A stretch of DNA of 63,251 nt, the filler included, from Olpidium bornovanus S191 (taxonomy: Eukaryota; Fungi; Olpidiomycota), in the NCBI GenBank assembly GCA_017911155.1. It is 29 parts of 29 records of this genome, joined end to end, with 100 filler letters (N's around TTAATTAATTAA, not from the genome) between each part and the next. Parts side by side here need not be neighbours in the genome. Positions count along the whole stretch, not along the records: positions 38,475 to 42,291 come from JAEFCI010000920.1; 28 more parts are not named here. One strand, written 5' to 3'. Shown piece after piece: positions 38,375 through 44,052 of the stretch (position 1 is the first letter of the stretch; every line of letters starts with the position of its first letter). The notes below the pieces were generated by a model that searched no databases, was not told the DNA's origin, and worked only from the letters and a program-made list of their open reading frames with translations. Position numbers and translations under genes: made by a program.

Positions 38375-38762
38375 NNNNNNNNNNNNNNNNNNNNNNNNNN
38401 NNNNNNNNNNNNNNNNNNTTAATTAATTAANNNNNNNNNNNNNNNNNNNNNNNNNNNNNNNNNNNNNNNNNNNNGAGATGATGTGGGGTGGCGGGTTACG
38501 CGGCGGCAAAAGATAAACAAACGAAAAAAAACCAACAAAAAAATGTCGTGACGCCCTCCCCCCCCCTCCCCCCCCTTTTTTTTCCTTCCACGCGTCTCTC
38601 CGCTAAACGTTTTTGTGTGTTTTGCGGGGGGCGGAATCAAAAGGGCGGAAAGGGTTCCCGGGCGCTCAACCGCCCCCGCCCCAAACACAGTCGACACACA
38701 CACACACCCATCCCCACACACCAACCCAGCACACCCACGCATTCTCCGTCTCTTCCTGGCCA

Positions 38763-38793
<31 letters not shown>

Positions 38794-38863
38794 CCCCCCC
38801 CCCTCCTCCCCCCGCCTTTGCTCTCTCTCTCTCTGGCATCATCTGCCTTCCCCCGCCCTTTCG

Positions 38864-40819
38864 ATGCGCCGCCGGCCGCACCGGCTCCTGCTTCTCCCCA
38901 CGCCGCTGCGGGCCGCCGCCCTCCTGGCGTTCCGGCCGCCGCCCGCCTCCTCCTCCGCCTCGGACGAGGCGGATCCCGCGCGCGCTCCGCAGGGCGGGAG
39001 CGCACCGTCCGCCCGCGCCGGCGGGGAGTGCGCCGCGCTCCTGCCGTGCCGCTCTTACCGGGTGACGGCCGCCAGGTTCTACGGGCCGGACGACTTCGAC
39101 GACGGGTCCGTGGTCTTTCCGGACGAGCGCCCGTTCTCCTTCGCCGTGCCCGCCCGGCTGCCGGTGACGGCCGGGAACTCGGGGAACGCCGCGGACGGCG
39201 CCGCCGCCCTTTTCGTCCTGGGCGCCGGCGCGCCGGCGGCGGCGGCGTCGGCGACGACGTGCTACTACAGGGGAACGTTCCCCGGCAGCGGGAACCCGTT
39301 CTACCCGGAGGAGATCGCCCAGGCCCAGACGTACGCTTTCGACCGGTGCGACGGCGGCGCGCGCGCCGGGAGCGTCGTCACCGCCTCGCAGGTCCGCCTT
39401 CGGGTCATCAGCGGCGGCAACGCGGGCGACGGCCAGCACACGTCGGTCGCCGTGAGCCTGGCCGAGGACCCCGCCACGTGCCGGCAGAGCGACGCGCCGC
39501 CGTCGACGACGTGCGCTCCCGAACAGACCGGCGGGGGAGGGAACGTGCGCGCGCGCGAGAGAATCTCATTTCTTTTTTTGTTTGTTCGGCGCCCACCTCG
39601 CCCGTCGGGGAAAGAACAAAAAAAAAAAACACCCCCGGCGGCCCGGCCGACGTCCCGCGCGGGTTGCGAGTTGCCGTCGTCAAAACAGAATTCTCCCCCC
39701 CCCCCCACATTCTTCCGCGCGCGCCCGCAGTCCCGACAGGTGCGTGGAGGATGCCGTTGCTGCAGACGAACGCCGCGGGGACGGCGGGCGTCTTCGCGGC
39801 GATTCTCCTGGCCGCGGCCGCCGGGACAGTCGCCTTCTGCTTCGGGCGGCGCAGGCGGCGGTGGAAGCGGCTCGCCGGAAAGCCCCGCGGAGGCCCGGAT
39901 CCCTCCCCGGGGACGTCCGGATCGGCCGCGGACGTCCTCGGGTCCGCGGGGCTGGAGAAGGGGGAAGAAAAATGGGGCCCGGCGGCGGCGGCGTCCGACC
40001 CGGCGGCGGGGGCGGCGGCGGGGGACCCGGCGGGCGGCTGCGACGGGCGGGCGGGCTCGGAAGCCACCCTGCAGCAGACGCTGATCCGGCCGCCCGGCGC
40101 GCAGGACGGCGGCGGCGGCGGCGGCGGCGGCCCGTGCCTGCCGGCGTCGATGGTGGTCGCCCCGATCCGCCGCGTCTCCATATCCCACCAGCACCCTTCC
40201 GCCGACCGGCAGCCGGACGGGCGGGCGGCGGCGGCGGCGGCGGCGGCGCGTGCGCGGGCGGCCGTCGGGCAATGCCGTTCCGCGCCCTGCGCGCCGGCGA
40301 CGCCCGCCGGCGGCCCTCCCGCGCGGGAAGGGGCGTACCACCGCGCGCTCTCCCCGGCGCCGCCCGGCGGGCCGGCCGAGGAGCCGGCCGCCGCCGCGGG
40401 AGACGCGCGGGCCGGGTGCGCCGAGCCGCGCGGCGGGGCCCCCTCGCCCGCGGCCGCCGCCGCTCCGGCGCTGCTCAACACCTTCGGTTCCAGCCGCGCG
40501 GCTTTTCGCCCGGCCGCCGCCGCCGCCGCCGCCGCGAACGACGAAAGCGCCGGTTCCGCCGGCGACGCGTCGGACGCCGGAGCTGCCGTCGCCGCGCCGC
40601 GTAAGAGAAATCGAGCGGTCGGGTCCCTTCCCCTCCACCCGCGGAGGCGCCGCCCCCCCGCGGGCTTGGGCTGACGCACCCCTCTTTCTCGTATTCCCCC
40701 GGCCCCCCGCGCCTCCCTCCGCGAAGCAGCGAGAGCGGCGACTTCGTCGGCAACCGTTGTGCGCGAAGACGCGACCCTCATGTACACGCGACAATGTGGG
40801 GCTTCAGATCATTTTCGCC

Positions 40820-40864
<45 letters not shown>

Positions 40865-41928
40865 TCTCTACATTTCTGCTCGGACTCCCCTCCGGCGCCG
40901 GTTGAGGGGGGAAAACCTCTGCGCGGCCACGTTTCTTCTCTATCCTTCTATTTTTTTTTTTTCCGGTTTCCGGAACCGCTCTGACGAAACGCCCTTCCGT
41001 TCCCCTTTTTTCGCCGGGCGGAAAAAAAAAAAAAAAAAAAAAAAAAAATATTCCAGCCCCCCTCATGCTCCCGTCGTTCTTGAAAATGAGCTACCAGGCG
41101 GATTTCACCATAGCGGGCATCATCGCGGAGGGCGGCGCCGGCGTCATCCACGCCGCCAGCCTCCGGCAGGACTACCACAAGGCCAAGCACGGGCACGCCC
41201 CGGTTGCGGTCAAGGTGATCAAAAGTACGGCGGCCGCTTTCCTCGCCCAAAAGTCCTCCCGGCCCGCCCCGCCCCCCAGCCCACGGCCGCGCGGTTTTGC
41301 GCGACGCGGAGGTTTTGTGTGAGCATTGTCGGTGACGTCGATCCCCCCGCCCCGCCCCGCCCCGCCACAGAAACCGACGGGTTCACCAAATCGTTCCTCG
41401 AACAGTACTTCTGCCAGGAAGTTTCCGTCCTGTGGTCCCTCTCGTTCTTGCCCAACGTCGTCAAGCGTAAGCGCGGCTTTTCCCCCCGGCCGCCCTGCCC
41501 TGCTGCTTTTTGCGCCGATGTTTATTACCGCCTCCTACGGGTGGCGGCGGCTACGAGCTTACCTGCAAAGCGGCAACCCCCCCGCTCCCCCTCCCGAACC
41601 CCGTCTGATACCCGACCCCCCTCAAGTAATCGGGTACTGCGAAGGTACAAGACAAAAAAAAAACCCCCCCGCGCGCGCAAGAAGAGCGGACGGCATTCAA
41701 GAAGACGAAACGCGCCTTTGTTTCAAGCTTCCGTTCGGACTCTTCGAGATCCTTGACCGAATCTCCCCCCCCCCCCCCCCCCTTCCCTTCAACTCGCAGA
41801 ACCGCTCGCGATCGTCACCAAACTGTACGACGGATCGCTGTTCCACCTGTTCGTGGCGAACAAAACCCTGCCGCTGCCGCCCGAGCTCGTTTTGAAGTTC
41901 GCGCACGGCATCGCATCGGCAATGGCAG
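38864..41928 (+). CDS. Single-pass receptor-like protein kinase (TKL-type), 3'-incomplete (exons 38864-39544, 39766-40600, 40730-40795, 41057-41224, 41371-41466, 41627-41644, 41800 to about 41928)
   Basis: Possible signal sequence, Cys-containing ectodomain, TM TAGVFAAILLAAAAGTVAFCFG followed by RRRRRWKR, an Ala/Pro-rich linker, then kinase IAEGGAGVIH..VAVKVIK..FCQEVSVL..PNVVK|LIGYCE|EPLAIVTKLYDGSL..KFAHGIASAM. All six introns are GT-AG and phase-compatible. Confidence 0.75.
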
Positions 41929-42108
41929 GGGATTTTCCGGCGAGCGCTTCCCGCCCCTCCCCCCCCCCCCCCTCGCCCCCCCCCCCCCCCCCCCAACCCC
42001 CCCCCACGCCACAGCCGCCGCTTCCCTCCGGGAGACAGCAGAGAAGGTGGGGGCGAGAGAGCGACGGAGCGCAGAAAACACCGGCAGGCAGGCAGGGTCT
42101 CTCTCTCC

Positions 42109-42156
<48 letters not shown>

Positions 42157-44052
42157 CCTCTCTCGGGCGCCGCCGGTAAGTGCGACGCATCTCCGCTGTC
42201 TCTCTTTCTCTCTCTTCCCCTCTCCGGACACCCCCCCCCCCCCCCCCCCCCCCCCCCTGGGGCCAAGCCCCCCTTCGCCGTCGCCAGCCGCNNNNNNNNN
42301 NNNNNNNNNNNNNNNNNNNNNNNNNNNNNNNNNNNTTAATTAATTAANNNNNNNNNNNNNNNNNNNNNNNNNNNNNNNNNNNNNNNNNNNNCCGACGTGA
42401 AGTTGGACAAACAATGGTGGAGATTACTACATCCACACGATCGATCGGGATCCGCTCGCCGCGTTCCACGCTTCTCTGCTCAAGTGAAAGAGGGAGAGGT
42501 GCGGAAGGAGGGTTGGTTGTGGGGGGACAAAAGTTTTCTCATGCGGCAAAAGTTCATTGAAATGACGGTCAGAACGCAACAATTATTCGAAGGCGCCGGA
42601 AAAAAACGCAAGAATTATTCGAAGACGCAGGAAAAAGTCCACGTTGCAAGTTTTGCACACTGCAACCTCAGCAATCGCGCCTTTTTGATTTTTTTATATT
42701 TGGTTTTCTGCCCTATCTTGAATGTCGTTTCCGACCGTTTTTGTTTCTGTCTAGTTCTATGCGCACAACTAGAAATCCCTTTCTCGCAGCAATGCCCGCC
42801 ACCACGTCCAGCTCTCCACGTGTTTTGATCTCGGAAAGCAATTGCTCCGGGCCAGCATTGGCCAGATTTGGCGCTCGCTTTCCCGGTCCACCTGGGAAAG
42901 CGTGCCCCCGATGGATGGGGATAAGGGGCGGGGGCGCGGGCCGGGGGAGGGGAAGGGGGCCAAAGTCGGGGGGAGTTTTGCAACTGGGCAGGGGATCATC
43001 ACTTTACGAATGACGGCAAATCGTGCAAACGCTCTTCCCTCCGAAAGGTTGCCAGAGATAGGTTGAGGTTGTTCTGGCTGAGTTGCGCTCCGGTTCGCAA
43101 GCGGACGGTGCCAAACGATGGTGACCCGCCGAGGCGAGCTGCGTGCGGTGTTTTTTTTTTCCTTGCAGGATTGAACGCGTAGCCCCGCCTGCACCGTTCG
43201 AAAGGATGCGAAATTCACCGTTTCCTAGTGTGAATCGTCCTGGCTCTCCGTCAGGAGGCCACAGATTGGCGAACGGATGGCACCAAACGAAAGAAGGCCG
43301 GCGGGGCTTTTTTTTTGACATGCGTTTCGGGAAATTCAGACGTAAGGCCGAGAAGCTACGGCATTCTCGAATGCAGGTAAGCGTTCCGCGCAGCACGGGT
43401 TCCTTACCGTTGCTATGGTTCCAGGAGACATGTAATGGAAATCACGAATAGAAGGGCCGAACGGTCCGTCGCGTATTCTAACTATTATTGAACTTCCTAA
43501 CGAAATCCCAGGGGGGTATAGAGGAAAGAGCCTGTGCCGCACGCTGCTCTTGAAAAGGGCGCCTTTTCCCTTTTTTCTTCTACAGGAGGCCGGGGGGCCA
43601 AAAGTGACCAAGGCTCATAACTTTTTTTTTCATGTTCGAAGCCACCTTGAACAATTATCGACGGGGTGTCGTTGCCAGGGAGTGCGACGGTTATGTTCTT
43701 CGTCAGCATATCAACGTTATCCGGTATGCGACTTGTTGCCGGTGGTGCCATTCCTCACGTCAGATTGTCATCAAACTTCGGGCAGTTCTGGCCTAAGNNN
43801 NNNNNNNNNNNNNNNNNNNNNNNNNNNNNNNNNNNNNNNNNTTAATTAATTAANNNNNNNNNNNNNNNNNNNNNNNNNNNNNNNNNNNNNNNNNNNNCAT
43901 GCCTGTGACCAAATAGTAGTAAATTCTCAATCTATCAATATCGTGGAGATTAAAAATACGCTAAAAGTACGCCGCCAGGTCGCGGTACATCCAGTTTGCC
44001 ACCCATCCGTTCCTTCCTGTGGTGAGCCGCACAGCTGAAGCCGCTCCCGCAT

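Follow-up and report, generated by a model that had tools for sequence, protein, structure and literature searches.

We examined positions 38475-42291 (record JAEFCI010000920.1) of a window of 63,251 nucleotides joined from 29 records of the genome of Olpidium bornovanus S191 (GCA_017911155.1), where an earlier note, made from the sequence alone, had proposed a seven-exon gene for a receptor-like kinase beginning at position 38864. Contigs assembled from two RNA runs, X1 and X2, supplied the transcript evidence and were placed on positions 38700-41990. The piece very probably contains the 5' two-thirds of one expressed gene, whose product would be a type I single-pass receptor-like protein kinase. 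The proposed order of ectodomain, transmembrane helix and kinase within a single gene was borne out, as RNA links the parts and full-length homologues share the same order. The features of the gene are collected in Table 1.

Because the G+C content of the piece is 70%, stop codons are few and long open reading frames (ORFs) remain open in several frames; the real frame was therefore identified from codon-position composition. The G+C fraction at third codon positions (GC3) is 0.92-0.96 up to about 39530 in the frame of exon 1, which is set by its first in-frame ATG at 38864, and 0.84-0.98 over about 39750 to 40570 in the frame of the transmembrane segment (exon 2), and it drops to about 0.6 inside the introns that had been proposed previously. 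When spliced at the RNA-supported joints, the model stays open for 674 codons with strong GC3 periodicity. An antisense ORF at 39408-40787, which has its third positions in common with exon 2, was considered as a real gene and rejected: G+C is higher at first than at second positions (GC1>GC2) in favour of the plus strand, the transmembrane and stop-transfer segments lie in the plus-strand frame, and the joints seen in RNA are GT-AG on that strand.

Table 1. Features of the receptor-like kinase gene, numbered along the window; residues refer to the spliced product.
Feature	Positions	Strand	Description
Exon 1	38864-39536	+	ATG, signal-like residues 1-23, ectodomain; contig covers 38873-39536 without differences
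Conserved extracellular domain	39029-39514	+	Residues 56-217; six Cys, GNSGN motif, predicted all-beta sandwich
Intron 1 (RNA version)	39537-39728	+	192 nt skipped, one extra A in transcript
Exon 2	39729-40600	+	Stalk, transmembrane helix, stop-transfer, linker; contigs cover 39729-40097 and 40546-40600
Transmembrane helix	39778-39846	+	Residues 242-264
Stop-transfer RRRRRWKR	39847-39870	+	Residues 265-272
Intron 2	40601-40729	+	GT..AG, 129 nt; joint 40600/40730 in both runs
Exon 3	40730-40795	+	66 nt; start of juxtamembrane motif, EDATLMYTRQ, resembling D.TLMNTK of homologues (P0096, P0103)
Intron 3	40796-41056	+	GT..AG, 261 nt; contains (CT)n and a poly-A run
Exon 4	41057-41224	+	LPSFLKMSYQAD motif; glycine loop AEGGAG (41125-41145); VAVK lysine (41203-41223)
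Intron 4	41225-41370	+	GT..AG; joint 41224/41371 in RNA
Exon 5	41371-41466	+	Alpha-C region, FCQEVSVLWSL to NVVK; both joints in RNA
Intron 5	41467-41626	+	GT..AG; reproduced in RNA
Micro-exon	41627-41644	+	18 nt, encodes LIGYCE; flanked by AG and GT
Intron 6	41645-41799	+	GT..AG; reproduced in RNA
Exon 7	41800-41928	+	Hinge and subdomains V-VIa, EPLAIVTKLY ... HGIASAMA

Two transcript contigs cover the model. The first aligns to 38873-39536 and then to 39729-40097, while the second (1249 nt in X1 and 1223 nt in X2) aligns in succession to 40546-40600, 40730-40795, 41058-41224, 41371-41466, the micro-exon and 41798/41800-41928, and then continues for about 677 nt beyond 41928 and off the piece. 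These data revealed that a single RNA carries the end of exon 2 together with the kinase exons. The earlier note had proposed that all six introns are GT-AG, and four of them were reproduced exactly in RNA, with the 40600/40730 junction present in contigs of both runs. A fifth, at 40796-41056, is supported in part: the two sides of its predicted 40795/41057 junction lie next to each other in one contig, where a single letter at the acceptor stays unaligned and no joint is listed. Only intron 1 took another form, which is described below. The micro-exon is real; both of its sides are exact in contigs of the two runs, where 16 contig letters plus 2 shared letters equal the genomic 18-mer at 41627-41644. 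In both runs the contigs also carry differences from the assembly: T>C at 41173, which turns Tyr into His in RQDYHKAK, and a silent G>A at 41181. The transcripts therefore derive from another strain or allele, diverged by about 0.5%.

For intron 1, the earlier note had placed the junction at 39544/39766. The corresponding GT-AG intron, 39545-39765, is in frame on the assembly, yet it differs from the contigs, which in X1 and X2 alike join 39536 to 39729 with an extra A between them. The intron aligned in this manner has the ends GA..GC, and the frame that leads from the ectodomain via ...EVPTGAWRMPLLQTNAAG into the transmembrane helix holds only with the extra A. Its ends form a 26-nt inverted repeat (39539-39564 and 39709-39734) that is 77% complementary; these ends are paired in the minimum-free-energy fold, the energy of which is ordinary (z = -1.28). 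This could be a truly non-conventional intron, or it could be a strain indel in the G-run at 39533-39537, a difference that is possible because the RNA comes from another strain or allele. A euglenid origin, suggested by a non-canonical intron with paired ends, was also entertained and set aside, as no supporting evidence emerged and the searches returned no euglenid-type homologue.

At the other end of the gene, the transcript extension of about 677 nt means that the remainder of the kinase exists in RNA, outside the piece. This agrees with the prior expectation that the HRD and DFG motifs lie beyond the contig, and no kinase motif was found in any frame of 41929-42291. After exon 7 the genome reads GGGATT and offers neither GT nor GC as a donor where the RNA places the end of the exon; either this donor, too, is non-canonical, or the assembly is broken here within low-complexity sequence. 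The 41929-42291 stretch carries poly-C and (CT)n runs to the end of the piece. An exact 30-mer from exon 4 was without a match in metagenome contigs, where neither a further copy nor the 3' exons were found.

The predicted product starts with MRRRPHR followed by LLLLPTPLRAAALLAF (residues 1-23), in which the hydrophobic stretch is weak, and its only strong hydrophobic segment is the one at residues 242-264, where the Kyte-Doolittle profile reaches a maximum of 2.24 (at 245-264). An outside-in topology is predicted because the poly-Arg stretch RRRRRWKR follows the helix, as the positive-inside rule would have it, and because the ectodomain contains six cysteines, two of which are invariant in the family. 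A linker of 243 residues (273-515; 30% Ala, 16% Gly, 12% Pro) lies between the stop-transfer and the juxtamembrane segment EDATLMYTRQSPLMLPSFLKMSYQAD (residues 528-553), which is spliced from exons 3 and 4 and precedes the glycine loop. The kinase motifs then appear in the order AEGGAG, VAVK, FCQEVSVLWSL, LIGYCE and EPLAIVTKLY...HGIASAMA. Among the invariant columns of the kinase alignment A2, the three G-loop glycines, the VAVK lysine and the alpha-C glutamate (QEVS) are kept; the departures from the family are an alanine for the fourth glycine of the GGGG loop and a leucine for the invariant methionine of SIMWSL. The piece holds only the kinase N-lobe, as far as subdomain VIa, and the catalytic competence of the Olpidium copy is putative.

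Pfam and PDB queries consisting of one short exon (33-55 aa), or of exon 1, returned nothing useful, and a word-indexed protein search with the exon 2 frame, swamped by Ala-rich low complexity, gave no match. Since single-exon searches were uninformative, the identity of the kinase was shown through homologues. Full-length homologues are present in Paraphelidium tribonemae (P0096, DN27840, 818 aa), Amoeboaphelidium protococcarum (P0102, MIR68_009483, 821 aa) and A. occidentale (P0128, KAI3657107.1, 802 aa), and further ones among environmental sequences (P0097, P0103-P0106). The named organisms are aphelids, algal parasitoids with zoospores that stand at the base of the fungi; they make up the Aphelidiomycota, which NCBI files under Fungi, and have annotated orthologues in GenBank. 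The spliced Olpidium model is colinear with these homologues through the ectodomain, transmembrane helix, juxtamembrane motif and kinase N-lobe, including exon 3 and the LP.FLK motifs. Using BLASTP with E-values scaled to a database of 1e9 letters (-dbsize 1e9), the match to P0096 reached 8e-15 for the ectodomain and 1e-26 for the kinase, with similar values for P0097, P0102, P0103 and P0104. Every homologue has one transmembrane segment upstream of the kinase, in a matching relative position, and the motifs HRD[LI]K..N, DFG and APE; clear signal peptides are seen in the homologues as well. Moreover, in two additional environmental eukaryotic contigs, kinase exons come after those of the ectodomain, all on one strand.

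The kinase tree placed the Olpidium copy inside the LP.FLK subfamily (support 80/97), and the kinase clade is sharply bounded, with about 16 close relatives at E<=1e-43 and the next match at only 5e-18. No named organisms other than aphelids were recovered in any search, in databases that included the public proteomes of other protists, and the remaining family members are uncultured environmental eukaryotes. As judged from sequence, the Olpidium gene belongs to an aphelid-type receptor-kinase family and, within it, to the LP.FLK subfamily. The earlier idea of a sensing system of zoosporic fungi fits the fact that the only named relatives are Aphelidiomycota.

Other members of the kinase clade in environmental eukaryotes (P0107, P0110, P0112, P0114) are joined to fn3, purple-acid-phosphatase N, furin-like or VSP Cys-rich ectodomains, and in one case to SH3 domains; more A. 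protococcarum paralogues also fall in the clade. Such combinations suggest that the receptor family is diversifying, with its sensors exchanged. In a different environmental relative (L001, 6380-7130), an intron follows ...NIIKLIG and precedes EEPYCIVTK, near the place of the LIGYCE micro-exon, and another follows the VA.K..K exon, as in the Olpidium gene. Some intron positions may be common to L001 and the Olpidium gene, although the orthologues of Amoeboaphelidium lack introns entirely or almost entirely.

The ectodomain retrieved 95 representatives with phmmer at E<=1e-3 (P0001-P0095). The family consensus is ...P..F..P..LPVT.GNAGN...VTC.Y.GG...HP...Y.F..C..G..AG...LHV..GD..., and the P, G and two Cys are invariant in alignment A1. 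Most of the relatives, about 85, look bacterial, being secreted proteins or lipoproteins with lipoprotein-type signal peptides and a location on long contigs or metagenome-assembled genomes, and they co-occur with MopE-type motifs, thrombospondin type 3 repeats or SpvB/FG-GAP/RHS toxin architectures; a few are eukaryotic, two of these with a kinase. In the SpvB/FG-GAP/RHS toxin-like proteins P0029, P0047 and P0064 the domain stands at the N-terminus. In the ectodomain tree, the Olpidium copy groups with all eukaryotic copies, the aphelid receptors among them (95 by the Shimodaira-Hasegawa-like approximate likelihood ratio test, SH-aLRT), apart from 48 bacterial-looking sequences.

No Pfam or NCBIfam match to this domain was found in 58 members. 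An AlphaFold model built on the 58-sequence alignment (predicted local distance difference test, pLDDT, 86.5; predicted template-modelling score, pTM, 0.79) is all-beta with about ten strands, and a Foldseek comparison of the ectodomain with the PDB and the AlphaFold clusters yielded no match at a template-modelling score above 0.5. Galactose-binding-domain-like jelly rolls (CBM32, F5/8 type C or discoidin, IFT25) are among the closest known systems; no significant structural or sequence match to CBM32 or F5/8 type C carbohydrate-binding modules was obtained. Together, the model and the searches identify the ectodomain as an undescribed family of predicted beta-sandwich domains of about 150 aa, about 160 aa in the Olpidium copy. 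Leads from the ESM-Atlas to small secreted fungal proteins (Hce2, Kp4) were weak (score 0.75) and were not used.

The type of kinase was assessed mainly on the homologues. The Pfam models PK_Tyr_Ser-Thr and Pkinase match them at about 1e-27 to 1e-31, with PK_Tyr_Ser-Thr scoring as well as or better than Pkinase. A single-sequence search listed ULK1 first and then CTR1 and PYK2, at only about 1e-13, whereas a profile of 16 clade members gave an EGFR entry at 1e-38, CTR1 at 1e-37, B-Raf at 4e-31, IRAK4 at 3e-30 and RIPK2 at about 2e-29. CTR1, B-Raf, IRAK4 and RIPK2 account for most of the best 60 PDB matches, with tyrosine kinases close; the CTR1 match is seven orders of magnitude better than that of IRAK4, and a plant CrRLK1L-like protein is distant, at 25% identity. 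The catalytic loop consensus of the family, read from the homologues and not from the Olpidium copy, is HRDIK.AN with invariant K and N, which is of the Ser/Thr type. The earlier assignment to the tyrosine kinase-like (TKL) group is a reasonable one given the HRD[LI]K..N loop of the homologues and a ranking in which CTR1, B-Raf, IRAK4 and RIPK2 come next after the EGFR entry, and 'TKL-like' seems a fair label on these sequence comparisons.

From this architecture a working scheme can be proposed. After a signal-like N-terminus, a disulfide-bearing beta-sandwich ectodomain would face outward, anchored by one transmembrane helix with its poly-Arg stop-transfer and continued inside by the long low-complexity linker, the juxtamembrane motif D.TLM.T...LP.FLK..Y and a TKL-like Ser/Thr kinase. 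An extracellular ligand bound by the ectodomain would cluster the receptors, and this clustering would switch on the cytoplasmic kinase, a mechanism familiar from other single-pass receptor kinases. A role in host or surface recognition is plausible; a surface glycan, whether of a host alga or of prey, is a speculative ligand.

Several observations weigh against reading the locus as one intact receptor kinase gene. Intron 1 is irregular, and the assembly is in frame there only with the extra A or with other splice sites. The N-terminal hydrophobic core, LLLLPTPL, is weak and interrupted by Pro and Arg; the C-lobe of the Olpidium copy (HRD, DFG, APE) is outside the piece; and in the tree the branch of the Olpidium kinase is very long (2.25, the median being 0.47), without a settled position within its subfamily. 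No single contig bridges 40098-40545, a GC-rich, low-complexity stretch coding for Ala, Gly and Pro within which contig placement passed over repeats, and continuity across it is argued from the open frame, GC3 of at least 0.9 and patchy contig depth. Finally, the raw poly-A/cDNA runs X17 and X11, which bear the same organism label, contained no exonic reads in about 10 million each, only poly-C artefacts. Raw reads of X17 pile up at 41890-41990 and 41765-41783 to a depth of about 43, with joints that go back and poly-C loose ends; these pile-ups are matches to poly-C tracts and not expression of the receptor kinase gene. One rival reading is a division into two genes, a transmembrane protein ending at the stop codon 40672-40674 and a small soluble kinase starting from the ATG at 41065, with 40675-41064 intergenic. 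The exon 2 frame is indeed open to 40674, the ATG is in frame, and the supposed intergenic stretch is lower in GC (about 0.5 at 40800-41050) and contains (CT)n and poly-A. However, in each of the two runs one contig continues from 40546-40600 into 40730-40795, 41058-41224 and the exons after them; exon 3 encodes D.TLM.T, a conserved motif that lies ahead of the kinase in all homologues; and these all have the fused architecture. The two-gene division is largely refuted by these data, and we consider it extremely improbable.

It is also improbable, though less so, that the locus encodes a degenerate or non-catalytic receptor, whether a pseudokinase, a truncated decoy or a pseudogene. Transcription and precise splicing, down to an 18-nt micro-exon, argue against decay, as do the 674 open codons with their strong GC3 periodicity and the retention of the lysine, the glutamate and three G-loop glycines; the transcript extension, moreover, is long enough for a full C-lobe. 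Against this stand the absence of the C-lobe from the piece, the branch length, the two substitutions in the G-loop and in SIMWSL, and a genomic frame that disagrees with the RNA-supported joint at intron 1 unless the extra A is counted. A harder alternative to dismiss, although we still think it unlikely, is that the gene is not fungal and belongs to an unrelated GC-rich protist or an assembly contaminant that shares the receptor family with aphelids. Its codon use and structure are very unlike those of sequenced aphelids (exons of 50-82% GC and at least 7 introns, against 42% GC and few or no introns), intron 1 lacks canonical ends and bears a terminal inverted repeat, the placement inside the kinase subfamily is loose, most family members are environmental sequences, and the runs filed under the organism label are very mixed, including whole-genome shotgun, Hi-C, ATAC and 'metagenomic' libraries. 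What speaks for a fungal or near-fungal source is that aphelids are the only named organisms in the ectodomain clade and in the kinase clade, and this in databases that also cover the public proteomes of further protists.

With the single receptor kinase gene retained as the preferred reading, one candidate for its bearer, which we rate as doubtful, is a GC-rich, intron-rich uncultured lineage, zoosporic-fungal or sister to these fungi and outside the known aphelid genera, that would have recruited its sensor once, possibly from bacteria, from a domain shared with bacterial surface and RHS/SpvB-type toxin proteins, for use in a host- or prey-recognition receptor kinase. If this were true, receptor-kinase signalling would extend further into the fungal stem than is documented, and a new binding module would have been named.

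As for precedent, the earlier note regarded single-pass receptor kinases as essentially absent from Dikarya, and this accords with the survey of 72 fungal genomes by Kiss et al. 2019, in which receptor-kinase architectures were not found (PMC6733946). The gene does have precedents: PMC10608142 refers to Mikhailov et al. 2022 on the receptor-like kinases of aphelids, which form distinctive sets, and GenBank contains annotated aphelid orthologues. Such receptors have already been reported in aphelids, and the Olpidium gene adds a member to a little-studied kind. The abstract of Mikhailov et al. 2022 reportedly describes a conspicuous expansion that is uncharacteristic of fungi. What the present locus contributes is an aphelid-type receptor family in a very different genomic setting, GC-rich and intron-rich with a micro-exon, in a gene that is transcribed. 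It also delimits an unannotated ectodomain family that is a candidate part for recognising an algal host or other surfaces, and offers a handle on target sensing in the phagotrophic or parasitoid relatives of fungi and on the losses that occurred as osmotrophic fungi arose. Current views are not overturned.

Of the known systems, the aphelid receptor-like kinases (P0102, P0128, P0096) are the closest. They share the ectodomain family, the single transmembrane helix with a basic stop-transfer and the motif D.TLMNTK..LPGFLK.DY, and the aphelid AEGGGG, VAVK, QEVSIMWSL and KLIGY all have counterparts in the Olpidium copy. Identity is 24-34% in the ectodomain and 36-41% in the kinase (38-41% for exon 4). 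In contrast to the aphelid genes, the Olpidium gene has a linker between the transmembrane helix and the kinase that is longer by about 180 aa and has a high content of Ala, Gly and Pro. It is also split by at least 7 introns and contains a micro-exon, where the aphelid orthologues have no intron or one, and its exons are 50-82% GC compared with 41-43%.

Further afield, the family has in common with TKL kinases (Raf/CTR1, IRAK/Pelle, RIPK) the Ser/Thr-type HRD[LI]K..N loop and the DVY.F..WE of subdomain IX, and differs from them by a long insert that separates subdomain VIII from subdomain IX; unlike the family, Raf and CTR1 are proteins of the cytosol, and no tree puts the clade within IRAK/Pelle-RLK. 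The 'LIGYC' motif of the Olpidium copy is familiar from plant receptor-like kinases. Tyrosine kinases (ALK-like, Src, EphA2) score nearly as well as the TKL kinases, and one EGFR entry scores better. The receptor tyrosine kinases of animals and their unicellular relatives resemble the family in their type I single-pass layout, with an N-terminal sensor and a C-terminal kinase, and in a lineage-specific diversification during which ectodomains were exchanged (fn3 and furin-like ones in P0107, P0110 and P0112). Their ectodomain is unrelated, however, and their catalytic loop reads HRDLAARN or HRDLRAAN, neither of which matches the loop of the family as sampled from homologues, the Olpidium loop lying outside the piece. 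By this predicted catalytic loop, the family is not one of tyrosine-kinase receptors.

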